In this document: piece by piece, positions 1,876-32,742 of the stretch
Layout of the letters: the number at the start of each line of letters is the position of its first letter
How positions within the stretch are numbered: position 1 is the first letter of the stretch
Assembly: GCA_011109175.1 (NCBI GenBank)
Contig: RDEW01000002.1
Location: forward strand, 872,676 to 905,675
Direction of reading: 5' to 3'
Source: Dicyema japonicum
Taxonomy: Eukaryota; Animalia; Dicyemida
Length of the DNA stretch: 33,000 bases
The notes under the pieces: generated by a model
What the model saw: only the letters and a program-made list of their open reading frames with translations
Told to the model about the DNA's origin: nothing
Database searches by the model: none
Position numbers and translations under genes: made by a program

Positions 1876-3393
1876 GCTTACTAGCACAAATAAGTAGATC
1901 CGAATATCGTGAGAACACCAAATGAGCACTTTTTCAATTCATTTTGGAAGGTGATTGCTTGATATGATGCCAAAAGTCTCACTCCATTGAGGTTGAAAAA
2001 GACGTTTTCTATCCGTTTTTGAAGAGCACTATTTTGAAAACGTTTTTATTGGAGATGTAAGTAATCATTTGCGATAATTCAGAGACCCACATAAAAAACT
2101 CAAGACCCTTGCCTTAGACGACCCAGGAATTCCAGGTTCGAAGACACAAGGGAACCGGATGTTGCACCCCCGATTTTTATCTTACTATATAGTCGACAAG
2201 ATTGTTATCACATAGTTTGTTGAGAAGGTGAACTTATCAACCTGACAGTATCAACGACTCGGGTTCTGACGACATTACTAAGAACCTCGAAAATACAGGA
2301 AAAAGTTGAGAATTTATTGGTGGCTAATTAAGGCATATTCAGTTCCCAGGTTGGACGTGAAAACCTAATTAATCCAAGCATCACGTCCCTTTACACCGGC
2401 ATTGTGTGAACCCTCCACTGTAATAGGGGAGGAAAAAATATTTATAACTTCTGTGACAATCGCAATTGACGCCTCTTAGGATTTGATGAAGGCATGAGTA
2501 TGTTTTCGTCTCAAACAAAATAGATCCACTGGATTTCTAGTGGGCCACTGGATTTCAAGAATATGGTGAATCCAATAACGCCTCTGTGAATTGAAGATGG
2601 CAAAGAGCAGAAATTCATCAATCAAGTAGGCAGCGGTAGGGGAATCAAACCCACTGCTAAAGATAACCTGTAAATTACGAGCATGAAATTACCTAGAACC
2701 ACTGCTAAATGCAACGCGAGAAAAGCACTCAGCAGATCAATCTGACCAAAAAACAGCAAGCAGAGTACGCATGAGCCGATTGAGTTTTTTGCCTATCCAC
2801 TACTAACAAGGTGAAACTAAATTCCCTCAAGAATGATGATTCGCATAACATGTCACCCAGAGGAACTCCTTCCTCCTCGCCTCTATGCTTTTGTAATCAA
2901 AAAAAACAGTATCTGCATCCTCTGATATTGGAACGACAAGCAAATCGATGTCCTCCTGTAAGAGGTCCTCTTTAATATCATTTTAACGACATTGATACAA
3001 GAAAGCGGGATAATTACTGCTATCGGTATTTATGACCACGTGACCCACTTCAAGAACGGTGAAAATTCAATGTATCCTGCAAAGTATCACAAATATAAAC
3101 ACTTGTGAGTTGCAAGCAGAAGTTAATGTTGCATACATCAGATTTTCCATTACATATGTAACGAAAATGCCATATATGCATGAATGTAGACTAATATAAT
3201 CAGATTTGAAAACTTTGATTAATTACATCATCAATCAGAGCGGATAGAACATCAACTCAGAAGATTCTTATAGCCCACTAAAACACCCACGTTTAATACC
3301 ATTAATTATTTAAATATTTAAATATTTTTTATCAAAAACAACTAACAATTTTTATTAATGGTTTTATTAATGAAAATGGTCAATAATGGAAGT

Positions 3394-4408
3394 TGGATGA
3401 ATCGTCGGTTAGGATAATCAGACTACTACTTGCGAATACAAGACTATCTGTGAGGACAGAAGGAGCAACTTCCCGCAGTTTCAAAACAACGATTGGGACA
3501 CCCCGGGGTGATTCCCTCTCCCCTTTACTATTCACCATATACCTTGAATCTGCACTCCGCGACCTCCGTAAATGCTATATAGGAGACATAGAAGAGACAT
3601 CTTATGCGGATGATGTGGATTTTGTATCACGGGATGTGACCGCACTCCAACACTTGCTAGAAAATGCACCTGCGTAGCTTGAGAAATGGTTTCTCAGCGT
3701 AAATGTTAACAAAACTGAAATTACGGAAATCGAAAGAGAATACGATACTACTCATGACAGATGGAGACGTACTAATAAGCTCGGCTCTCTACTAGGAGAC
3801 GCTGAAGATGTACTAAGGAGGAAAACACTGGCAAATGCGGCAATGACTAAACTAAAGAAAGGATGGCTAAGGGCCAAAGGACTTGGAATTGACATCAGAT
3901 GCAGGCTTTACAACGCGTTTGTGAAACCGATCCTACTGTACAACGCTGGGACATGGGAAAGTTCCTTCAACGAACTATTGAAACTGGATTCGTTCCATAG
4001 AAGGCAACTAAGAAGCTTACTCGGAATGGAGTGGCCACGTAGAATATCAACCACTGGTATCTACAACAAGTGTATGTGTTCTTACATCAGCAAGGATGTG
4101 ATAGATGCCCGGTGGAGGCTATTTGGGCATGTACTAAGAATGAACCCGGACGCACCCGCTAACAAAGCGATGGAAGATTACTTTGACAGATGCGAAAAAC
4201 CCTTCCGCGGACGACCTAGATCGACACTTCCGACTGCCTAAACAAAGACTTAAATCGTGTGAGAAAAAATCTAAAGACGGGGACGACCTGGACGAATTGA
4301 GATCACTCGCATTCGACAGAGGAAAAGACTAACTATAAATATTGTTTCTTTGAGTGTTGCACATGCGGTGCTATAATCATTATAGCTTTCGATGAAAGTG
4401 CTAATAAT
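3394..4408 (+). mobile_element. 5'-truncated RTE-clade non-LTR retrotransposon (RT C-terminal half)
   Basis: PRGDSLSPLLF, YADD and YNAFVKPILLYNAGTW motifs in one frame broken by a single TAG (3675-3677); (TAA)n tail; 12-bp target site duplication AATAATGGAAGT at 3382-3393 and 4409-4420. Confidence 0.92.
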
Positions 4409-6141: not shown

Positions 6142-7947
6142 TATTATTAGCACTTTCACGAGAGCCATAATATTTATAGCCCCGCATGTGCAGCAAAAAA
6201 TATGAGAGAATTAGTTAGGTTGCTCCAAGCTCTTCTGTTCATAGCTAGTGAGTCCAGATCGTCACCAGATGCCAATGTTTTCTTCACGGCTTTCAGATCG
6301 TTTTGTAGAACGACCGGGAGGGTAGTTTTCGGTCTTCCACGAAAGCGTCTTACATTGGGGAGTAGTAATCTACCATTGCGATATTCAAGGGGATATCGGG
6401 TCCAACCTCAGGACGTATCCAAAAAGTCTCCAACGAGAGCTAATGATCTCGTGACTTAATGGTGTACAGTCACACTTATTGTACAGTCCATTCCGCAAGA
6501 TCTTGGATGGCAGGAGATTCTAGTTATGTTTCTTAGATGATTCTGTGAAACGAGTCTAGCCTCTCCAATTCCTCTTTTGAGGTGGCCAGGTCCCAGAGTT
6601 ATATAGTAGGATTGGTTTTATAAAGGTGTCGTATAACATTATCCTTTGTTTTACGTTATTCCTTTCCGTTTTAGCCATAGGTTTTTCAGCCCGTATAATG
6701 CCGCGTTTACCATGTTTTTCTCTGTATGATATCTTCACTATCTCCTAATTGGGAGCCAAGTTTCTTTGTATGTCTCCATTTCTCTTCGAGTGAGTTATTC
6801 ATTCGTCTTATTTCTGTCCGTTCTGTTTTTTTCTGTTCACGGTGAAAAACCATTTCCCAAATATATCTGGTGCTTTTTCTAGTATATGTTCCAGGAGTTT
6901 TTTGTCTTCAGAGATTAGGTCGACATCATCAGCATAAATCACTTCTTCTATTTTTTCATTGGTATAATTGTCTCAGTTCCCTCATAGCGGCCTCCAAGTA
7001 TATTGTGAATAGTAACGGAGAGAGGGAGTCTCCTTGAGGAGTGCCTGTGTTTGTTTCAAATTTTCTTGAGTAGGTTTTTCTAACTCTCACAAGGAGTTCT
7101 GTTTTAAATATAAGAATTTGTAACATTTTTAGACTCGATTCGTATAAACCTTCCAGCACTGTCATCAATTTGTTCCTGTTAACTTTTGATAGATCTATGT
7201 GGTGACATTGCAATATCTTTATGTGTTGCACATCTCATCTGTGACTCCAAACTGCATCAGCTGTTGATTTCCTTCTCTGAACCCACTTTGACTTTCGGGT
7301 AGTCGGGTCCTTTTATTCGTTCCAATACAATGTTAGCTAAGACTTTTTGTAGAGAATTTGTTTCCTTTGCGTGTCCATTTCGTGTATTCTCATTATTATT
7401 GTTTGTAGTGTTGTTATGTTTCTTATGTTTGATACCATGTTTCAATAACCATTCTGTGATCAGTTGTTGAACCTTCGTATGAGCGTGGTTATTTGTCATT
7501 GATCCGGCATATAATGTAATCAATTTGGTTGTATATAGGGACTAGTTTTCCTTCTGGGTTTCTTCGTTCGCCCATCCAAGTGGTTATGTGGCATGCACGA
7601 TGAGAGAATGCGGTGTTGCACAAGAACAGTTTGTTTGCCGTGCAGAAATGGCCAAGTATGGTCCCAGGCAAGTTTCTTTTCCCACGTCTGTGTCTTCCCA
7701 TGAAGGTATCTTCTGAGTCGATATTTTCCATGGTTTTCATCGAGATAGTAATTTTCGTATCTTGTGTACAGCCAATGGTAACGTTGTATCTTTCTAGGTC
7801 ATCACAGAGAGTATTTCTTGACTGAGGCTTAGATATTCCTCTAGCATTGAACGTATGAAGCTTTAGGGCATGCATATTCTTTTGTATCTTCTGCTTTCTA
7901 GACATTTTTCTTAACCGTTGTACAGAGAAGAAACGAGGCACGTCACC
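6142..7947 (-). mobile_element. Internally deleted RTE-clade retrotransposon (APE + RT remnants), both ends present
   Basis: APE motifs (TFNARG, NQIDYI), RT motifs (PQGDSLSPLLF, IYADDVD, YDTFIKPILLYNSGTW), 3' UTR plus (TAA)n tail, and 16-bp TSD ACCTCATTTTATAAAT at 6126-6141 and 7948-7963. Confidence 0.92.
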
Positions 7948-16199: not shown

Positions 16200-16800
16200 T
16201 TGCATATGAAAAGATAATATACACGGAGAAATGATCAGATATGCTCTCATGGAGCTAATAGTTCTTATAACAAATATATTCAACTCCTTATTTGAAGCAA
16301 ATTCTCTTTGAAGTTTAGAGATTGGATTTTCCTTTCAAAAACCAAGAAAGAACAAAAGACCATCACAAAATCTGAGGCCGGTGATATTACTGAGAACAAT
16401 AAGGAAGATACTATCTCTTATTGTCCTCAACTGAATATCTTAGGGACTCTCAGAAAAAAAGTAGAGAAATTGTTGTCTCCAGGACAGAGCGGATTCAGTA
16501 GGGGACGCTTCTACTGCTGATGCTGTCTCATACTACAAGTGGATTTGTGCCCTATGCCAACGAGAATTCAAAGTCTGGAAGTTGATATGTCTAGTGCCTT
16601 TGACGCTCGACAGAAGATTATTGCTGAATGTTACTGGAAGTTTCCTTGATGAAGACTTGAACTGTTATTGGAAGTTTCCTTGATGAAGACTTGAACTGTT
16701 ATTGGAAGTTTCCTTGATGAAGACTTGAACTGTTATTGAAGTTTCCTTGATGAAGACTTACGTTAGTAATATGTTTAAATTGGCAATTGAGAATTAATGC
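16200..16800 (+). mobile_element. Degenerate RTE-like RT fragment
   Basis: QNLRPVILLRTIRKILSLIVL, LSPGQSGFSRGR, VDMSSAFD and FLDED in broken frames. Boundaries approximate. Confidence 0.75.
16631..16759 (+). repeat. Tandem repeat, 34-bp unit x ~3.8
   Basis: TTATTGGAAGTTTCCTTGATGAAGACTTGAACTG repeated head-to-tail starting at 16631, 16665, 16699 and 16733, with no spacers. Confidence 0.95.
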
Positions 16801-20860: not shown

Positions 20861-23337
20861 AATTTTCGATGTAGTTCTCCTTTACGTGGAGAAAATTGGA
20901 TACCAGTATCAATCTGGCAACTAAAAGAACCACAATTATTCCCCTGTCAACCTCTTCAACGACCTCTGGGAAGTCGGACTGGATGATGGCGGCTATTGAG
21001 CGGGCGCGTAGCTTTCGCTCCCAAAGATCGGATTGGCTACTCCTAATCCTTCCTGGAGACATCGAACAGAACCCTGGGCCCCATAAGAACGGGAAATTCC
21101 CCAATATCATGCAATTCAACATAAACGACCTCACACAATCAAATGAACTTTTTGCATTCCTAACTTCCCACAAAATTGATATTGCCATACTACAAGAAAC
21201 GAAACTATCAAGAAAGTCAGTGCTTCCACACTACAAGGACTACTCAATTGTCCGCCGTGACCGACCAAATTCAAACAGAGGAGGCGGTGTTCTCATACTA
21301 ATACACAAATCTATTCCATTCTCCGATACTTCCGCTCAGACACAAGCTCTGTTTGAAGATGACGATCACATCGAACTTACTTCCGTCTTGGTGAAAATAA
21401 ACCACACAAGGTATATATTTGTAAATATTTCATCCCGCCACCAAGTCCCAGTATGAAATATTACTCCCCAAAACTAACCGAATTGCAAAAGATTGAAATG
21501 TGATAATCTGCGGAGACTTAAATGCAAAAGATCCTCTCTGGCTAATCGACCAAAGAGTAATGAAAGGGGGGTTTCAGGTCATCTCTCAATTAGAACAATT
21601 AGTTCTCCTCAATGACAGAAAATCACACACTCGAGCAGCTTCCAGACCTGTATCATGGAGAATTGTATATGACCTACACTCGGACCATAATCCAATTCTA
21701 CTGTCAATCGAACTACTCTCGCCTACTGTTAGGCATCGGAAAACTATAAAGAATTACAAACGTGCAAAACATTCAGAGAAGAAACAGAAAAATTTCTATC
21801 CGACTTTTTCGTTGAGAATTTCAAATCGCTTGACGCCGCAATGAAATTTTTTTAAGAAACTAATATCGAAGTATCTTCCCTGATTTTCAACATGGCTTTC
21901 GTCCAAAATACTCAACATTAACACATCTCTCTACCCTAACTCTATATATCGCTGATGGTTTAAACAATTACAATCTTCCCAAACGGACTGTCCTTTCATC
22001 GATTGATTTAACCAAGGCGTTTGATCGAACATCAAGGCACGTGCTAAGTAACAAAATTCTTACATCTCTAATTCCTCCACGTCTTCAGAATTGGCTAACA
22101 AATTTCTTCTCTGGAAAAATTGGTCGAGCTGAAATTATGTCATGTCTATCTCACTATAGACTCCTTCCAAATGGAGTTCCTCAAGGCTCCGTCTTATCAC
22201 CCACCTTATTCAACTTACATCTAAGCGACATTCCAATCAATTCCAAGACACTTCTACTATTGTATGTGGATGACCTCACTATTGCCTCTAAAGACATTGA
22301 CGTTAACGAAGCAACGAAGGATGTTCAGATCCACTTGAACACTCTTGAAGAGTGGCTTGGAGCAAAACACCTATTCCCCTCTCCATCGAAATCCACCGTC
22401 ACTGTATTCACGTCCAACCGCCGCCAACTAAATTTTCAACCAATTTTAACAATTCATGGACAACCACTCGCCGTTACGAAACATCCCAAAATACTTGGAG
22501 TTATTTATGACCAACTACTAACCTTCTCTAAACATGTGGAGGAACAATGTACAAAGGCCTCTCGCAAGATCAACATACTTAAAGTTGTGTCAGGGCATTC
22601 CTTCGACCAAAGCAAAGAAGCCCTAACCATCATAAACAATTCATTCGAACAACTATTAACTATGCAAGCCCTTGCTGGTCAACCTCTGCCTCTCTTACTT
22701 CTATTGACAAACTACAAAAAGTACAAAACATCGCGCTCAGGATAATTACTGGATGTCTCAGATCAACTCCTGTCGATCATCTACATTGGGAGATCCTTCC
22801 AATTGGAGACCATCTGGAAATGAGAGCCCTGCAGTTCCTTTCCCAAGCCTACAGCCTAGAACATCCTTGCCACTCTCTATGCAAACCGCAAAACAAAAGG
22901 AGAATTATTATGACAACCACCTGTCTCGAATGTCATCATCCATCCCTTCCATCCCCAATGACAGGAGTCGTCTGAAACAGATACATGATTTTGTTTCTAC
23001 GAGAAGCATCCGAAGACTCGGAGACAATAAATTATTACAGCGACCCCTCCTCCAATAGACCAATCAGAATCCTCTTTTCCAAGGGACGTCCGAGTAAATC
23101 TGGGTCGTCTACGATGTGAGCACCACCCATATCTATCAATATATGATATACTCTGTCCCTTTTGCAACCTCCACGTGTTGACAACAAACCACCTATTTGA
23201 ATGTCATGAATTAGCACAACGTTTCTCCACAATACATGAACTGACCGATCTATGGGAGCGATCAACATCTGGTGCGTCCTACTTAATAGCTGCTGGCCTA
23301 CTACAAGTTAGTGAGGCTGGGGTTACCTAACTAACTA
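20861..23337 (+). mobile_element. Near full-length, decayed Vingi-like non-LTR retrotransposon (2A-APE-RT, no RNase H seen)
   Basis: GDIEQNPGP 2A, IMQFNIN/ILQETKL/CGDLNA/SDHNPI APE, GVPQGSVLSP/YVDD RT, C-terminal CPFC...HLFEC...DLW; (CTAA)n tail; 8-bp TSD ACTCGGAA at 20853-20860 and 23338-23345. Confidence 0.9.
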
Positions 23338-24000: not shown

Positions 24001-26159
24001 GACTGATCGGAAAGTAGCTAGCTAGATCCTTCTTTGGTTTCCTGTCTTTTCTACTATCCATACAACTGTTTCCTTCCACCCTAAAAATAAACTTAACAAA
24101 TAAATATAAAACGACAGATCTTCTAGAAGAACGGTTTTATTAGAATATCTCCGTCTATAAGATCGATATCTCTTTGACCTACTTCTTTACCTCCGCCTTT
24201 TATCCCTCCCTGAATTCGCTTAACTCTTCAATTTTCCCCAAACCTGTTCAAGTCATAATTCATCACTTCCAGCTTTTCAATCATCTCCAGACATCGAGAC
24301 AGCAGTATGGAAGGTCTTAGTCACCAGCTTATCGGCACCTTTGATCTTTTAAATAAAGTACAATCACTAGCACTGTCTTAAATTATATCAGACCTCTTAA
24401 TTCCTGTAACCAACAACTCTTCAACATTTTGGTAACAATATAAAACAAATCTGGTTTGTCTTAATTTATTGTTCCATTTCTTTATTATTTCATATTTGAA
24501 AATTAAAAAACCAGTAGTATTTGCTTTTAGGGATCAAGATCACCAAGAAAGAAGGAGTCAAAGCCAACTAACAAAGCGAACCCGACTCTCTTCAAGTTGT
24601 CCGCCAGGGATCACACGAATTTCTGCAAAAAAACTTGATCAGGGTGTTTTCTTCAAAACTCATCGGGAATCTTCCACATGGATAACTTTTTCAGTATGTG
24701 GAAATCTTGGTTTTTTGAGAAACACAGGAAACCTAGTCGACTTTTTAAAAAGAGATTTTTTTTCGTGTGATGGGAGAGCATGATATTCTGCAGGAGTAAA
24801 TTGATGGGTATTGAGATACAACACGATAAATTCTCTAACAAACCTCTCTACCAATTATTCCATCCCTCCTTGACCACTCCAGAATAACGAGTCCAGTTCC
24901 CTAACTCTCTACGATGTCGAAATTGACCCTTCACTTAAAAAAACAGTAGAAGCCACAAAAACGTGTAAATTGCAAGATTCTGCTGAAAGATGACTATGGT
25001 AAATAATATTCGAAAAAACAATTCTCTTGACTGAACACGACATTACATGGTACAGTATTCATCAAATTAATAAAATTTGTTGATGTAGATCACAGGAGGG
25101 AGAATGCTCTTTTGTGCTTTTGAACTATTCCACTTGGTCATAATTTCTTCAGCGCAGGAACCTGCTGACTTTTTCAACATAATAGAAATCATTACTCTTG
25201 ACAAAAGATACGAAAATGTCCCAACGAAATCCTTTCGTTTAAGAATACAACATATGACGAATTTCTGTCTTTCACTGATATATCGACAGTGAGATAATAG
25301 GTCTGTCCATTGTAAAAAAGGTAGGAAAGATTAAAAGGCTTTTCTACCTGTTCACATTCCGTACGATTTTGTTACACAAAAAAAGTGAAAAGTAAGAAAT
25401 TTTAATCAAGAATATATTCTTCAATCAGAAAGTGACCTCTGTGAAACCAAGTAGCCGTTCCTGTTGATCACGACAGTTAGAGATTACAAATTAACGCGAT
25501 CTTGCTTACTTCAACGAACAAATAAATTAAAGAATAGCTTTTTACATCACTTTTAGCAAAAAAAATAATAAAAAATTCCGAGCATTTAATAAATGTATAT
25601 GCTCCACCAAAATTGATCAAACTGAGAAACCAAAAGATCGACAATCTCAGTTTATGACAATGATTAGTTAATAATTCATTGCTTCCGAAAACAAATTTCT
25701 GTCATTTTCTATACAATGTGGTGTTTGATCAATACGCTGTTTCTGGATTTAGGGAAAAAAATTCATTAGATGTGAGAGATTTCCAAAAAAGATTTGTCCA
25801 GTTTCGAATCAATGAAAAACATAAGGTTAGTTCGAATAAACATAAAAAACTAAGTAGGAACTATTCAAGCTGTCAACATGGTGATTTCTTTAAATCCTTT
25901 CAATAAAAATATGTTTCATTAAAATTTTCAAGCATTTTATGAATTTTTTGGCCACGCCTAAATATATTTTGTCAAAAAATATATTTTGACAAAAAGATAA
26001 AATAAATAAACAGTAAAAATCCTAACATAAAAATTATCATAGTCAAAGAAAATATTTCAATATTATTGTTAAAGAAAATATTATGTAAATTAATTATCAA
26101 CGCTATAATCACAAATTTTATTAAATTATTATTTATTTTTATAATATTATTAATTTATA

Positions 26160-28857
26160 ATGGTCGACCCTTTTTATAATAAAATAATAACATATGGATT
26201 TAAGAAATCGAAGAGGGGAGAATTTGAGAGAATTGCTTCCTATGTCCGTGATCAAATCAAGATAATTGAGAAGAAATTGAGAATTTATGAATCAAGAAAG
26301 GGATTTAGAAGAGCCAATTGGTGCTTCGAGTTGAATAGAAGGCGGTTCTACAGAAATATTAGTGGAGATAATAAGAAGGGAGTGCTGAATTTCGATGAAG
26401 GGGAATGTCTACCTTTTTGGACAACCATTTGGAATGAGAGTGATCGAAAGGAGAGCAAATTCTTGTTGAACAAGAGAGTGACTGGGTCTGAAAATTCTTA
26501 TGCCGATTTTACAAAGGAAGCGATCGTCGATACTATCAAGATGCTTCCAAATTGGAAAGCGTCTGGGTGCGACGGAGTTTATAACTTCTTTATCAAAAGT
26601 TTTACTTCGATTCATGAACATCTTTGCGAGGAGATTCAGAAGATCATAAATGATGAATACACGCCTGGTGATTGGTTCTACACGGGGATAACACATCTTA
26701 TACCAAAAGTGGACGTATGTAATTCACCCAAGGAGTTAAGACCAATTACGTGTATGCCTAATCTCTATAAACTATTGACAAAGTGTGTGAACAAGAAATT
26801 ATCTGAATATATTGAATCGTACGATCTCTTAAGTGATAATCAATTGGGAACTCGGAGGATGTGTCAAGGAGCCAAAGAACAAGCTTTGGTGAACCAATGT
26901 TAAATCAAGAAATGGAAGTAACTTATGTTCTACCTGGATCGATGTTAAAAAAGCATTTGATTCCGTTGACCACGAGTTTTTGGGCGAAGTGCTCCAGAAT
27001 TCTGGCCTGCCTTTCTGGATTGTGAGTTTTATCACGAAACTTGTTGGGAAATGGAAGATACGACTGAATTTGGAAGGAAAAGTGTTGGGGGAGATTAGAA
27101 TAAGAAGAGGAATTCTACAGGGGGACTCTCTTTCGCCACAGATCTTTGCTTTGTTAATGGACCCCCTTAGCCGAATATTGAATGGAAAATTTCCTAAAGT
27201 AACTATGGGAAGCCCGGGAAATGGAGAGCCAACATATGCCACTAATCACCTTCTGTTTATGGACGATATAAAGTTGTTTTCTCACAAAAGTGATTCAATG
27301 GTTATGATGATGGAAGAAGTTGATTCGTTTTTTGATGCAGCCGGGTTGGAGAGGAACTTTGACAAATCTGCAACAAATGTCAAGTCCTTGTCTGGGAAAG
27401 CTCGTTTCCTTGATGGATTGGATGGATACCGATATTTGGGAGTTCTTGAAGATAAGAACAGCAATGTTCTTAAAGGAGAAATTATGAATAAAATCTATGG
27501 AGAAGTATCTAAGCGGATCAAAAATTTGACGAAGACGGATTTAAACTCAGTGAACCTGTTTAAAGCTATGAATGAGTATGCAATCTCCCTTTACAACTAT
27601 TACATTGGATTGATTGATATCGAACCTGGAGAGTTTGAACAGATTGATAAAAATATTCGCAGAATTCTTATGGACAGTCATATCCACTTGCAACCGGCAA
27701 ACAAAGAAAGACTTTATCTACCAAGAAATAAATTTGGAAGAGGCCTCGAGTCAGTCAGTAACAAAGCAGAAAGAATGCTCCTCCAATTTTATAGTGATTT
27801 GGAACATAAGGCAAATTACTGCCTAAGAAGAGCGGGAATTCTACGGGTCATTAATTCAAAGAAAATACACATGGCCACTATCGTAGAATTCATCTCAAGA
27901 AAGTACAACATTGAAAATGTGAAGGATTTGACAATGTTGAAATTGATGGAAATACAACATGAATATCTACTGGGAAAAATTGAAGAGAAACCGCTGCACT
28001 CTATTCTATTTGAGTGTCTGAAAGATACCGAAGTGAATATTGCTGAATCCTCAGGGTGGTTAGTTCATGGAAATCATTCTCCTGTAACCGAAGGAAGGCT
28101 GTGTCTGCTTCAGGATCGTAACATGTTTTTTGATAATGGAGAAGCCAAGTGCAAACATTGTAACTCAGGAAAGAAGACCGTTGATCACCTTGCAACTAGA
28201 TGTGGGAGAATGCTGAATAGCTCGTATCTCAGGCGGCATAACGAGGTGGTCAGATGTATTCACTTACACCTCTGCCGTCAATATGGAATAAGAAAAACTA
28301 AGAAACTGAAGACCCACTCAGTCCAATCTGTTGTCTCAAATGAATTTGTGGAGATTCGTGTAGACACAACGATTAGTACAGATACGGCTGTACAGAATAA
28401 CAAACCCGATATTTTCGTTCATGATAAGGTGCGTAATACGATTACTCTCGTTGAAATTGGGATCACGTCCCAAAACTGCCTCAAGCAAGTCGAGGTGGAA
28501 AAGTTCCATAAGTATGACTTACTGGCGAACGAACTCGGATGTATTCATCGCGCAAAGGTAAAAATAATCCCTGTAGTCATTACCTGGGATGGGATTGTTT
28601 CGAGATTCTTCAAGGGCCATCTGGATGCCCTCAAACTGGAGGAAAGGGTGAAAGCGTACATCCAAACGTTAGTATTGAGAAAGACGTTGGAGAGCATGCA
28701 AGCTGAAGATAGACATGGAGTATCGATACCTGATGAGGAGGAAGCTGATAAGGAATGCCGACCTAGGGGAGTCTCGGAATGTGGGTTGTGCGACAACGAA
28801 AACACACCTATACTGACAATTGACGTTGGCCCCAAGAAGAGGAGATTAGCTAATTAA
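26160..28857 (+). CDS. Retrotransposon RT-REL polyprotein, ~899 aa if two single-base deletions near 26900-26915 are repaired
   Basis: 247-aa and 625-aa ORFs join as ...ALVNQCLNQENGSNLCSTWIDVKKAFD... when one T and one A are added to short homopolymer runs; ends in basic PKKRRL. Confidence 0.85.
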
Positions 28858-28890
28858 TTAATTACTTGTGACTCGTTGTTTCGTTAAAAT
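26191..28890 (+). mobile_element. 5'-truncated R4/Dong-like non-LTR retrotransposon (RT + CCHC + restriction-like endonuclease)
   Basis: Absent from paralogous copy B (empty site at 31641-31667). Motifs KAFDSVDH, QGDSLSP, FMDD, CKHC...H...C, RRHNEV and KPDI...VEIG; imperfect A/T-rich TSD-like flanks. Confidence 0.95.
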
Positions 28891-28919
28891 ATAAAAATAA
28901 AATTTAACGGTTAATTCAT

Positions 28920-29452
28920 ATGATTGTCCTATTCAGTTTGATTGCTGCTGGTAAAATTTAAGTAAACATTTTAGTTTTCTCTCCGTGTCCTAAAATATCG
29001 CAATTAGTAGTTGGGGCGAACGAGTTTAGAGGAATTTGTTATTGGCCAGAATTACAAAAATTTAACTGTGAAACTAACGGAGGAGAATTGGTATGTTTAA
29101 ATTAGTTTTTTAGGCAAAAATTAAATCTGAAGAAGAGTCAAACTTTATTGTGGGATTGTTAAATTCAGTTGATTTATGGGATCCTATAAGCCGATTTGGG
29201 TTACTTATTGCTGGAAAATTTGAAAATGGAATTTGGATGCTTGATGGTAACTAATAAACTCTATTTTTAGGACAAGCAATGAATTACACAAATTTTTATT
29301 ATTCGAAATATACTGCAAATCTGAATATTACTAGTCGTTTAAGTAAATGTGTTTGTATAGAAAATGCAATAAAGTGGCAAATGATTGCATGCTCTTGTAT
29401 TCTGAAATATCTTAATGGACTTTTGTGTCAATCAAGTAAAATTTTTTATTAA
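28920..29452 (+). CDS. Secreted C-type-lectin-like domain protein, paralog A (4 exons, 153 aa)
   Basis: Introns 28951-28974, 29091-29113 and 29247-29270 give MIVLFSLIAAVFSPCP...CYWP...CETNGGELAKIKSEEE...WMLDG...CVCIENAIKWQMIACSC...CQ, a signal peptide plus CTLD Cys/Trp pattern; no EPN/QPD motif. Confidence 0.85.
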
Positions 29453-29659
29453 TATATTATCGGCATCTCCCTCAACTCCAACAACACCAACTCCAACAAC
29501 ACAACTCCAACGACCTCTCAATACCAATTCCTTAACTAACGACTAATACATTTACTTTTGGATTTTGGGAAAGTTTCGTTAATCACAATACAATATAATT
29601 TCTAGTAGAATATCGAGTCTGAAAAGATTAATCTTTTTTAAGCAAAAAAACAATTTAAT

Positions 29660-30420
29660 TAGGAAAAAGGTGAGCATATGGTCATATAGCGACCGTCCGA
29701 GTGCGTGGCTATTTTCTCTTAGGATAGCGTGCGAGATTCATTCAAATAACCAGAAGCGCTCATAGAAGTCTCCTGATAGTGTAGAAATCCGATTATCTAG
29801 ACGACTCCAGAATTCCAGATGTCTCAACGGAACGAATAAATAATCATTTAGTAGGACCGTGTACTTTTCCCGTTTAAACCTCTCGGCCTTCTCATCAGCA
29901 GAACAAGCTCCAGAGTCACTCTGAAGTAGGTTGCAAGGGGCAAATGTGTCGGTGTAGGTGACTTCCCAGACGAGAGGTTTCCCGGTTTCAAAATGGAAGA
30001 TTGACATTCCATCAGGTCTTTTTCTCTCACGCCTGCAAAGAACGACTGGTTCGAGCATGGAGAGGTTTCCAGCAGCATCCAAAGCTCGCCTAGCGAGTTC
30101 GTTCAAGGCCATGTGTATGGGAAATCTGCCAGCACTCTTCCTGCAAAACGGACGGGGTAGGCCAAAACAGTCGATCTGGTCTCCGCTCTGGCACGGATGT
30201 GGAACACAGACTTTTAATCCAAGTCGTAATGAGATCCCAAGACACATTCATCATCCAGGAAGGTAAAAACTCCATTGGGATCGGCGATTAGTCAGTCACC
30301 GCTTTTGGAGGACGCACCCGACAGCAAACAAGTACGGGGAAGTTGGCTAGATGACACAAGCAAATCTTCGAAATAAGTCCAGCGTTATAGTTTGCTGTCA
30401 TTGTTGAATTTTAATTCAAA
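29660..30420 (-). mobile_element. Degenerate CRE-like non-LTR retrotransposon 3' fragment (Zn knuckle + REL endonuclease)
   Basis: LRLGLKVCVPHPC, ALNELARRAL, RKRPDG, PLVWEVT.TDT, AERFKREKY and ERISHAI. Boundaries approximate. Confidence 0.85.
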
Positions 30421-31676
30421 CAAAACATTTTGATTTGGTTGATCGAAAAATGATTGAATAAAAGAAATCATATAGGTATCGACACTGGAATTTATTTAAA
30501 AGATATCCTATATGAAAATTCTTTCCCTGAAAACTCACATCCTAAGAGGAATTTTCTGATGTTGATTAAAGGAGGGAAAAGGCTCTTTTGTGTCTTTGAA
30601 CCATTCCACTTGGTCATAATTTCTTCAGCACAGGAACCTGATGACTTTTTTAACATAATAGAAATCATTACTCTTGACAAAAGACGCGAAAATGTCCCAA
30701 CGAAATCCTTTCGTTTAAGAATACAACATATGACGAATTTCTGTCTTTCACTGATATATCGACAGTGAGATAATAGGTCTGTCCATTGTAAAAAAAGGTA
30801 GAAAAGATTAAAAGGCTTTTCTACCTGTTCACATTCAGTGCGATTTTGTTACACAAAAAAGTGAAAAGTAAGAAATTTTTAATCAAGAATATATTCTTCA
30901 ATCAGAAAGTGACCTCTGTGAAACCAAATAGCCGTTCCTGTTGATCACGACAGTTAGAGATTACAAATTAACGCGATCTTGCTTGCTTCAACGAATAAAT
31001 AGTTTAAAGAATAGCTTTTTACATCACTTTTAGCAAAAAAATAATAAAAAATTCCGAGCATTTAAGAAATGTACATGCTCCACCAAAATTGATCAAACTG
31101 AGAAACCAAAAGATCGACAATCTCAGTTTATGACAATGATTAGTTAATAATTCTTGCTTCCGAAAACAAATATCTGTCATTTTCTAGACAATGTGGTGTT
31201 TGATCAATACGCTGTTTCTGGATTTAGGGAAAAAATTCATTAGATGTGAGAGATTTCCAAAAAAGATTTGTCCAGTTTCGAATCAATGAAAAACTTAAGG
31301 TTAGTTCGAATAAACATAAAAAACTAAGTAGGAACTATTCAAGCTGTCAACATGGTGATTTCTCTAAATCCTTTCAATAAAAATATGTTTCATTAAAATT
31401 TTCAAGCATTTTATGAATTTATTGGCCACGCCTAAATATATTTTGTCAAAAAATATATTTTGACAAAAAGATAAAATAAATAAACACTAAAAATCCTAAC
31501 ATAAAAATTATCATAGTCAAAGAAAATATTTCAAAATTATTGTTAAAGAAAATATTATGTAAATTAATTATCAACGCTATAATCACAAATTTTATTTTAA
31601 TTATTTTTATAATATTATTAATTTATAATGGTCGACCCTTTTTATAATAAAATAATAATATTAACGGTTAATTCAT

Positions 31677-32209
31677 ATGATTGTCCTATTTAGTTTGATT
31701 GCTGCTGGTAAAAATTAAGTAAACATTTTAGTTTTCTCTCCGTGTCCTAAAAAATGGCAATCTATGGATAGGGTAAACGAGTTGAATGGATTATGTTATT
31801 GGCCTAAATTTGATACAGAACATTCTAAGTGTGAAGATGATGGAGGAGAATTGGTATGTTTAAAATAGTTTTTTAGGTAAAAATTAAATCTAAAGAAGAG
31901 TCAAACTTTATTGTGGAATTGTTAGATGTAGTTAATGTATGGGATCCTTTTGTCCGATATGGGGTACTTATTGGTGGAATATATACAAATGGAACTTGGA
32001 TGCTTGATGGTAACTAATAAACTCTATTTTTAGGAAAACCAATGGGTTTTACAAATTTCTTTAATTCGAGTTTTAATGCAAGGCTGAATAATCATTCAAA
32101 TGATTGTATTTGTTTAGAAAATGCACTCAAATGGCAATGGATTCGATGCCCTTGTGAAAAAAGGTATGTTAACGCAATTATGTGTCAATCAAGTAAAATT
32201 TTTTATTAA
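31677..32209 (+). CDS. Secreted C-type-lectin-like domain protein, paralog B (4 exons, 153 aa)
   Basis: Introns 31708-31731, 31854-31876 and 32010-32033 give an open frame with the same signal peptide and the same 8 cysteines as paralog A. Confidence 0.85.
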
Positions 32210-32400
32210 TATATAATTGGAATCTCCTTCTACTCCAACAACACCAACTCCAACGACCTCTCAATACAATTCCTTAACTAACGACTAATACATTTACTTT
32301 TGGATTTTGGGAAAGTTTCGTTAATCACAATACAATATAATTTTCTAGTAGAATATCGTGTCTGAAAAATTAATCTTTTTTAAGCAAAAAAACAATTTAA

Positions 32401-32742
32401 TTAGGAAAAAGGTGAGCATATGGTCATATAGCGGCCGTCCGAGTGCGTGGCTGTTTCTCTCAGGATGGCGTGCGAGATTCGCTCAAATAACCAGAAGCGC
32501 TCATAGAAGTCTCCTGATAGTGTAGAAATCCGATTATCTAGACGACTCAAGAATTCCAGATGTCTCAACGGAACGAACAAATAATCATTTAGTAGGACCG
32601 TGTACTTTTCCCGTTTAAACCTCTCGGCCTTCTCATCAGCAGAACAAGCACTCTGAAGTAGGTTGCAAGGGGCAAATGTGTCGTGTAGGTGACTTCCCAG
32701 ACAACTGGCTTCTTGCTTCAAAATGGAAGATTGACATTCCTT
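32401..32742 (-). mobile_element. Shorter duplicate of the CRE-like fragment
   Basis: Near-identical to 29660-30012 with small deletions. Confidence 0.85.

Follow-up and report, generated by a model that had tools for sequence, protein, structure and literature searches.

The window studied here is a 33-kb stretch (33,000 nucleotides, nt) of contig RDEW01000002.1. It contains a tandem pair of genes on the forward strand, A and B, whose exons for the mature protein have diverged several times more than the introns and flanking DNA around them. Each gene codes for a protein of 153 amino acids (aa) with a C-type-lectin-like domain (CTLD). The 153 codons of both genes are split by three introns with GT..AG borders (24, 23 and 24 nt), and the reading frames and splice sites are intact in the two copies, an observation that supports the interpretation by selection given below. 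No third copy was found in the 33-kb window by tblastn. The gene models were as follows:

28920..29452, + strand: gene A, 153-aa CTLD protein, predicted to be secreted (splice model, translation, Pfam)
28920-28950, 28975-29090, 29114-29246 and 29271-29452 (including the stop codon), + strand: exons of gene A
28951-28974, 29091-29113 and 29247-29270, + strand: introns of gene A
31677..32209, + strand: gene B, 153-aa paralog (splice model, Pfam, AlphaFold2, Foldseek)
31677-31707, 31732-31853, 31877-32009 and 32034-32209, + strand: exons of gene B
31708-31731, 31854-31876 and 32010-32033, + strand: introns of gene B

Both proteins begin with a short hydrophobic leader, MIVLFSLIAAVFS, and are probably secreted. 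Their Pfam scores for Lectin_C (PF00059), 23.5 bits for gene A and 27.1 bits for gene B, lie above the gathering score of 22.6. The AlphaFold2 model of gene B, for which an alignment of 54 CTLDs was used as input, had a predicted local distance difference test score (pLDDT) of 83.7 and a predicted template modelling score (pTM) of 0.79. Foldseek returned 367 matches to this model in the PDB at E ≤0.001, and the best 50 of these 367 were CTLDs, with MCL, lithostathine, CD23 and other CTLDs at the top (template modelling scores, TM, of 0.56-0.65). The predicted structure of gene B is that of a CTLD, with two helices, two antiparallel sheets and a long-loop region. In addition, C44, C120, C136 and C146 occupy columns that are at least 90% conserved across the 54 CTLDs and would provide the predicted C1-C4 and C2-C3 disulfides; all eight cysteines are common to A and B. 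By sequence inspection, the EPN/QPD and WND calcium/sugar motifs were absent from both proteins, the equivalent positions reading NARLN/NLNIT and KWQW/KWQM. Therefore, A and B should be named lectin-like proteins and not lectins.

Within the CTLD superfamily (PF00059), A and B resemble above all the calcium-independent members (lithostathine, CD23, MCL, snaclecs). They share with the superfamily the Pfam match, the predicted fold, the canonical cysteines and the GG.LA.I.S.EE..F and W...DG motifs, and differ from it in the missing calcium/sugar motifs, a very short first helix and an additional cysteine pair (C.C ... C.C). They also stand apart by sequence: HMMER, run exhaustively against 1.84 billion representatives, yielded only generic CTLDs with at most 31% identity, the nearest being metazoan CTLDs that included amphioxus and insect mannose-receptor-like proteins and proteins of Elysia and Steinernema. 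Neither the full-length protein of gene B nor the exon 4 peptide had a match in an index of 5.8 billion proteins. It must be noted that the protein libraries searched evidently do not represent the genome that carries A and B. No paper linking Dicyema to lectins was found, nor are lectins named in the supplements to the published genome of D. japonicum. We consider that the two genes belong to a CTLD family that is probably lineage-specific and previously undescribed, in a probable dicyemid.

Genes A and B are the central parts of a duplicated unit of ~2.7 kb, made up of an upstream arm, the gene and a 3' arm. Divergence was measured on a gap-aware alignment between the two units, with the following differences outside exons 2-4:

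upstream arm: 34/1110
introns: 2/71
unique 3' part: 1/166
3' repeat part: 15/319
exon 1: 1/31

The non-coding DNA as a whole differed at 57 of 1707 sites (3.3%), while in exons 2-4 the difference rose to 91 of 425 sites (21.4%; odds ratio 7.9, p = 7e-31). About six tandem pairs were seen among the non-coding differences. A hyperdivergent patch of 16 nt in the upstream arm (25384-25399) was discarded as an alignment artefact of two 1-nt indels, so that clustered mutation in the non-coding DNA is weaker than it first looked.

The pattern agrees with most of what an earlier note on this stretch had described from its letters alone. The paralogs, said to be ~58% identical with two 2-codon indels, share 89-90 of 151 residues (59%) and differ by two in-frame 6-nt indels. 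The signal-peptide exon and the introns, reported as almost frozen, differ by one silent base and by 1, 1 and 0 bases, respectively. Likewise, synonymous changes proved few among the unchanged codons (5-6 of ~90), the variable codons are often changed at two or three positions (24 of 61), and the flanks, put at ~95% identity, are 3.1% diverged over the upstream 1.1 kb and 0.6-4.7% on the 3' side. The fixation of all eight cysteines between A and B and the assignment to the CTLDs were right as well.

The limits of the units and their surroundings were:

25074..26193, + strand: upstream arm of unit A, homologous to 30550-31661, with 34/1110 mismatches (3.1%) and 7 gap events
26194..28903, + strand: 5'-truncated long interspersed nuclear element (LINE), on the same strand as the genes, with RVT_1 matches in the open reading frames (ORFs) 26160-26903 and 26980-28857
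29453..30000, + strand: 3' arm of unit A, homologous to 32210-32740, with a high-copy repeat fragment from 29660 on
30550..31661, + strand: upstream arm of unit B, preceding gene B
32210..32740, + strand: 3' arm of unit B, with a shorter repeat fragment than in unit A

Read support was obtained from contigs of four public runs of one sample, all of which behaved as DNA at this locus, splice joints being absent. Contigs 31723-32025 and 32006-32210 matched gene B exactly. Those of gene A covered 28966-29262 and 29243-29453 and showed four variant sites with respect to the assembly. The two genes and the unique spacer between them had similar depths (in the deepest run, ~610-815), and these, counted at a likeness of at least 90%, corresponded to a single copy of either gene. 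Both sequences are real and each is present in about one copy. Three of the gene A variants, at 29407, 29411 and 29416, lie within 10 nt in one read haplotype and all carry the base of gene B; two are silent and one exchanges Leu and Val. This haplotype is either an 11-nt micro-conversion or a clustered mutation. At 29179, contigs of three of the four runs have T in place of G, which turns a Trp conserved in A and B (DLWDP/NVWDP) into Cys, and the fourth run has G; it is probably a polymorphism that segregates in gene A.

It could be argued that a single locus is present, and that the assembler laid out in tandem two divergent haplotypes, A and B, from a pool of parasites. The sample is indeed polymorphic, with 6 variants in the 224 nt of 30400-30623, and the two units are joined through at least ~225 nt of a very high-copy repeat (29971-30195) that no read contig bridges. 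The outer boundaries of the units differ, however, with no homology between 24500-25073 and 30000-30549, and the units are further distinguished by the LINE, inserted in one of them, and by a 3' repeat fragment of unequal length. Read contigs span the step from 30400 into unit B's upstream arm and bear out that junction, and the depths given above are alike. We therefore give this artefact very little credit and, moreover, if A and B were alleles their hyperdivergence would persist and would need the same explanation.

Divergence is not uniform along the coding region, which is a mosaic of a middle segment and two dense tracts:

28996..29078, + strand: dense tract 1, in exon 2 (alignment columns 18-47; gene B homolog ~31753-31841), with a 6-nt indel
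29079..29272, + strand: middle segment, comprising the end of exon 2, intron 2, exon 3 (helix alpha-2 and strand beta-2) and intron 3
29273..29428, + strand: dense tract 2, in exon 4 (alignment columns 97-147; gene B homolog ~32036-32185), with a 6-nt indel

Frozen silent sites, as claimed earlier, are found only in exon 3 and at the gene termini, where 0 of 30 silent third positions differ; the claim fails for the tracts of exons 2 and 4, where the proportion of differing synonymous sites (pS, 0.27-0.31) is about equal to that of nonsynonymous ones (pN, 0.31-0.32).

In exon 3 together with the last four codons of exon 2, the differences fall 9/10/1 on the three codon positions (pS 0.016, pN 0.17-0.18). 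Exon 3 has 20 differences of which 0-1 are silent, giving a ratio of nonsynonymous to synonymous change (omega) of ~10, and the introns that flank it have changed at 1 of 47 bases. It is more diverged than the non-coding DNA with p = 1.6e-7, and the chance of finding 0-1 silent changes among 20 neutral ones is 0.008-0.05. Some 20 amino acid changes with essentially no silent ones, in a segment that shares its recent ancestry with its introns, are explained only by positive selection, since a mutator or a greater age would also have touched the silent sites.

In this regard, the silent sites bear directly on whether the genes are old paralogs under concerted evolution, in which conversion between A and B would homogenise the non-coding DNA after an ancient duplication and selection for diversity would protect the coding differences. 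A synonymous divergence (dS) of 0.4-0.5 per segment in the tracts and the gene-B-like patch in the gene A haplotype would fit such a history, as would the 6.7% divergence of the distal half of the upstream arm against 1.5% of the proximal half in a first alignment (p = 1e-5), a gradient that was partly an alignment artefact. Conversion would nevertheless have to hit three introns of 23-24 nt and the 30 silent sites interleaved with the 16 changed codons of exon 3 and spare those codons themselves. Among four-fold sites in codons sharing their first two bases only 1 of 30 differs, which excludes a uniformly old coding region; likewise, the interleaving of silent sites and changed codons in exon 3 rules out a history of homogenisation alone. 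Exon 3 would still require ~20 adaptive replacements since the last common ancestor, so nothing is saved, and the LINE and the repeat truncation are not shared between units, while large-scale homogenisation would tend to spread or remove them. This history is accordingly improbable, and the interleaved silent sites also disfavour the old paralogs with homogenised flanks and introns that the earlier note had offered as the way in which its own reading would fail.

The two tracts behave in a different way from exon 3. Tract 1, which covers the N-terminal strands and the short first helix, has 18 of 28 codons changed, with 8/8/11 differences by codon position, 1 of 9 silent third positions different, pS 0.31 and pN 0.32. 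The usual ligand face of CTLDs, formed by the long-loop region and strands beta-3 to beta-5, falls within tract 2; 28 of its 49 codons are changed (16/17/11 by position), with 3 of 19 silent third positions different, pS 0.27, pN 0.31 and at least 6 silent steps. The tracts are ~30% diverged at all three codon positions and stay ~70% identical under any alignment. Compensated frameshifts were considered as their cause and rejected, because exons 2 and 4 still show 20 and 35 mismatches, respectively, in a gap-friendly DNA alignment. One candidate for such an event was found at 29398-29410 versus 32155-32170, where a 5-nt deletion and a 5-nt insertion around a shared TGAAA span the change from Cys-Ile-Leu-Lys-Tyr to Cys-Glu-Lys-Arg-Tyr and would be a possible alternative to eight separate substitutions.

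Over all shortest codon paths, the silent steps in the two tracts together number at least 9, whereas 1.4 would be expected for their 41.5 synonymous sites at the non-coding rate (p = 1.5e-5). As their omega is ~1, selection on amino acids alone is insufficient for the tracts. The excess of silent change, the indels and the sharp borders with identical 21-30-nt blocks mean that something beyond selection is needed there, for which the candidates are import from diverged copies or alleles and multi-site mutation. The amino acid divergence of the tracts could still owe to the same selection as that of exon 3.

The first of these candidates leads to a mosaic ancestry, in which flanks, introns and exon 3 would be recent and the tracts would have been imported, by short-tract conversion or recombination with end-points in the conserved blocks, from diverged family members or from long-lived divergent alleles under balancing selection. 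The silent steps agree with it, since none are found on the 31.8 sites of exon 3 against the minimum of 9 in the tracts (p = 0.008), and so do the strictly silent third positions of unchanged codons, which differ in 4 of 28 cases within the tracts and 1 of 54 elsewhere (p = 0.044). The nearly equal divergence of the three codon positions, the 6-nt indel in each tract, the perfectly identical blocks of 21-30 nt at their borders and the 11-nt gene-B-like patch in a gene A haplotype point in the same direction, as does the depth of the upstream arm, 2-6x that of single-copy DNA and hence compatible with copies elsewhere. The donor is another matter: the window holds two copies, the single-copy depth at a likeness of at least 90% indicates that there is no recent donor, and the protein libraries contain no family member, although they evidently do not represent this genome. 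Given the number of differences, moreover, the silent share is not significantly different between exon 3 and the tracts (p = 0.2-0.28). Imported tracts are thus possible, if somewhat doubtful, and even then exon 3 would need positive selection. An extended form, with A and B as two of the genes in a larger family of dicyemid CTLDs whose conserved blocks (signal exon, ultra-short introns, core motifs) anchor recombination, the coding cassettes being shuffled between copies or alleles, seems to us unlikely.

The equal divergence of all codon positions in the tracts (omega ~1) would also be expected from programmed or regionally targeted mutation, that is, hypermutation focused on exons or transcripts or mutagenic reverse transcription of the type of the diversity-generating retroelements (DGRs). 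The transcribed non-coding stretch just past the stop codon is likewise 20% diverged, and gene A has a reverse-transcriptase gene 16 nt upstream. For a mutator, however, the 20 replacements of exon 3 with 0-1 silent changes are impossible. No bias towards adenine or any other base was observed (the differences between A and B affect 26% of the occurrences of A, 18% of T, 22% of G and 45% of C), the transition/transversion ratio is not significantly different from that of the non-coding DNA, and no template repeat was found in the window. The reverse transcriptase belongs to an ordinary 5'-truncated LINE, of a common kind with similar fragments across the window, and stands beside one copy only. 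The contigs of the four runs show no variant of gene B and four in gene A. For these reasons DGR-like mutagenesis was rejected, and targeted mutation in general is highly improbable.

Our preferred interpretation, to which we assign a probability of roughly 0.45, is that gene pair A/B arose by a recent tandem duplication and that positive selection has since diversified it, on a CTLD scaffold that was conserved, with an extra process in the two tracts. A lineage-specific gene for a small secreted CTLD protein would have been duplicated in tandem recently, neutral divergence now being ~3%, and diversifying selection would since have driven the mature domain apart. The signal peptide, the eight cysteines, the core motifs (GGEL, WMLDG, C.C.EN..KWQ), the splice sites, the introns and the flanks would have been held constant. 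Host interaction is the likely selective agent, through diversification of ligands or epitopes that may include the turnover of N-glycosylation sites. The silent changes and in-frame indels of the tracts would then be traces of multi-site events (micro-conversion, complex indel-associated changes or clustered mutation) fixed alongside the selected changes. The protein itself is consistent with this proposal. Along strands beta-3 and beta-4 the residues are changed and conserved by turns, which suggests that the changed ones lie at the surface, and the columns of the changed positions show more variation among CTLDs in general (p = 0.044). The predicted N-glycosylation sequons do not overlap at all between the proteins, with NYT98 and NIT112 in A and NGT89, NSS106 and NHS115 in B. 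Additionally, a two-class codon model gives an omega2 of ~4.6 in about half of the codons. In favour of multi-site events are the three clustered gene-B-like bases of the gene A haplotype and, with the reservation given below, the better fit of a codon model with double hits.

Several observations weigh against diversification by selection as the general explanation. For the whole gene, the Nei-Gojobori method gives dS 0.18 and a nonsynonymous divergence (dN) of 0.26, and maximum-likelihood omega is 1.1-1.6, not significantly above 1 (likelihood-ratio statistic 0.1-1.5). A dS comparable to dN, which the earlier note had named as evidence against its reading, is formally what is seen in the whole gene and in both dense tracts, the latter with their omega of ~1 and their silent excess. 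Fixing dS at the non-coding level is rejected, if weakly (likelihood-ratio statistic 5.3), and the upper class of the mixture model is not significantly above 1 (0.21). A codon model with double hits fits better (likelihood-ratio statistic 5-12.6), a gain that may reflect rate variation among codons and not true multi-nucleotide events; neighbouring differences on either side of a codon boundary number 4, with 6.4 expected, and so show no excess. It must be considered that mixture and dual-rate codon models applied to two sequences cannot separate selection from heterogeneity of rate or age (likelihood-ratio statistic 1.97), and that the comparison of two sequences without an outgroup leaves the changes unpolarised. 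Of the 62 replacements, 16 are conservative hydrophobic swaps that are not obvious targets of selection. The first 25 nt past the stop codon differ at 5 positions (20%). Finally, gene A, with the LINE 16 nt before its ATG, may be poorly expressed. With respect to the two options of the earlier note, diversifying selection and patchwork conversion from a donor family, both survive and neither suffices alone: exon 3 fits selection and the tracts need more. As for a donor of conversion, the window holds two copies, both at single-copy depth at a likeness of at least 90%, and the protein libraries gave no relative above 31% identity.

The surroundings of the CTLD pair are gene-poor and rich in transposons, with LINE fragments throughout the window. 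The LINE of unit A was inserted 16 nt before the ATG of gene A; unit B has none, and the homology between units restarts at that very point. It cuts gene A off from its original upstream region, so that transcription through the LINE or poor expression is possible. Read depth over the upstream arms (25074-26193 and 30550-31661) is ~2-6x that of single-copy DNA and exceeds what the two copies of the window account for; there may be additional copies elsewhere in the genome, possibly beside other family members. The outer 3' arm is formed by the high-copy repeat (29660-30440 and 32390-32650; depth from 10 to >100x single copy), an unclassified element whose 169-aa minus-strand ORF (29738-30247) has no Pfam match, and it is this repeat, bridged by no read contig, that the tandem link between A and B crosses. 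In the 3' untranslated region, a short repeat of the CAACAACACCAACTCCAA type (29478-29530 versus 32235-32270) differs by 14 nt in length between the copies. Read depth is low or absent around it, and 32260-32389 is uncovered in three runs. Other LINE fragments with reverse-transcriptase and endonuclease domains were located at 3393-3677 (+), 6956-7231 (-) and 20896-23058 (+), and a tandem array of ~4 copies of a 34-nt unit, TGTTAYTGGAAGTTTCCTTGATGAAGACTTGAAC, 98% alike, at 16629-16771. No Rfam family matched anywhere in the window.

The earlier suggestion that this DNA comes from a probable parasite was sound: introns of 23-24 nt, ~36% GC, LINE-rich DNA and the 2019 date of the read runs fit Dicyema japonicum, whose published genome has a GC content of 36.7%, 49% repeats, many LINEs and ultra-short introns (PMC6736024), introns of this kind being otherwise found only in myxobolid myxozoans (PMC13644364). 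At the protein level, the LINE reverse transcriptase at 26980-28857 is closest to sequences annotated in Octopus sinensis (50-67% identity; contigs of 0.2-0.5 Mb), followed by those of microsporidia, Babesia and mites. The O. sinensis locus (GCA_006345805.1, VCDQ01002782.1) has 35.5% GC and 67% DNA identity over 2.4 kb. This octopus is a likely host of the presumed parasite, and the likeness could come from transposon sharing between host and parasite or from parasite DNA within the octopus assembly.

Dicyemids are parasites of about 30 cells that live in the kidneys of cephalopods and, to our knowledge, almost nothing is known of how they interact with their host at molecular level. Exons that diverge seven times faster than the DNA around them make A and B strong candidates for factors of the host interface, where they might serve in adhesion, immune evasion or glycan mimicry. 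If cassette shuffling were true, it would be a case of templated diversification of a host-facing protein in one of the simplest animals, with a logic like that of antigenic-variation archives, and much more notable. As regards the gene-conversion archives of the VSG, var and vlsE type, in which segments of many donor copies recur as mosaics in the expressed gene, two copies lie in the window and depth indicates no near-identical donor. The likeness to DGRs of bacteria and phages lies in the C-type-lectin fold of the variable protein and in the adjacent reverse transcriptase; A and B differ from them in lacking a pair of template and variable repeats and an adenine-specific pattern, in the nature of the reverse transcriptase, which is a eukaryotic LINE fragment, and in variation that extends over the whole domain. 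Among parasites, an expansion of CLEC genes was reported in the myxozoan Myxobolus honghuensis (PMC8855578). There too a parasite with a reduced genome keeps and duplicates secreted CTLD genes for which a role at the host interface is proposed, although that report concerns copy number and not hyperdivergence restricted to exons, and the likeness to A and B is by description only.

[quoted passage not shown] A and B are similarly recently duplicated genes for disulfide-rich proteins of predicted secretion, with introns and flanks far more similar than the mature exons (3.3 versus 21.4% diverged, the mark of accelerated evolution), with cysteines and fold preserved, and with short exon segments that look replaced beside near-identical neighbours. 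By the venom-type standard of dN > dS, exon 3 stands out (omega ~10, p = 0.008-0.05), the whole gene at 1.1-1.6 is not significant and the tracts lie at ~1. As to segment switching, both dense tracts have indels and are sharply bordered by identical sequence; being ~70% identical, they are recognisably homologous and not unrelated as in ASSET, and A and B are known from DNA alone. The organism is also different, a tiny parasite, as are the scaffold, a CTLD, and the number of known copies, which is two. The phenomenon is therefore already known, and what is new is the gene family and the lineage, a probable dicyemid. With 2.7 kb per unit and introns of 24 nt as built-in neutral markers, the locus is a compact test case that bears on the same question as the venom genes, namely whether exons outpace introns by selection alone or also by segmental exchange or local mutation.

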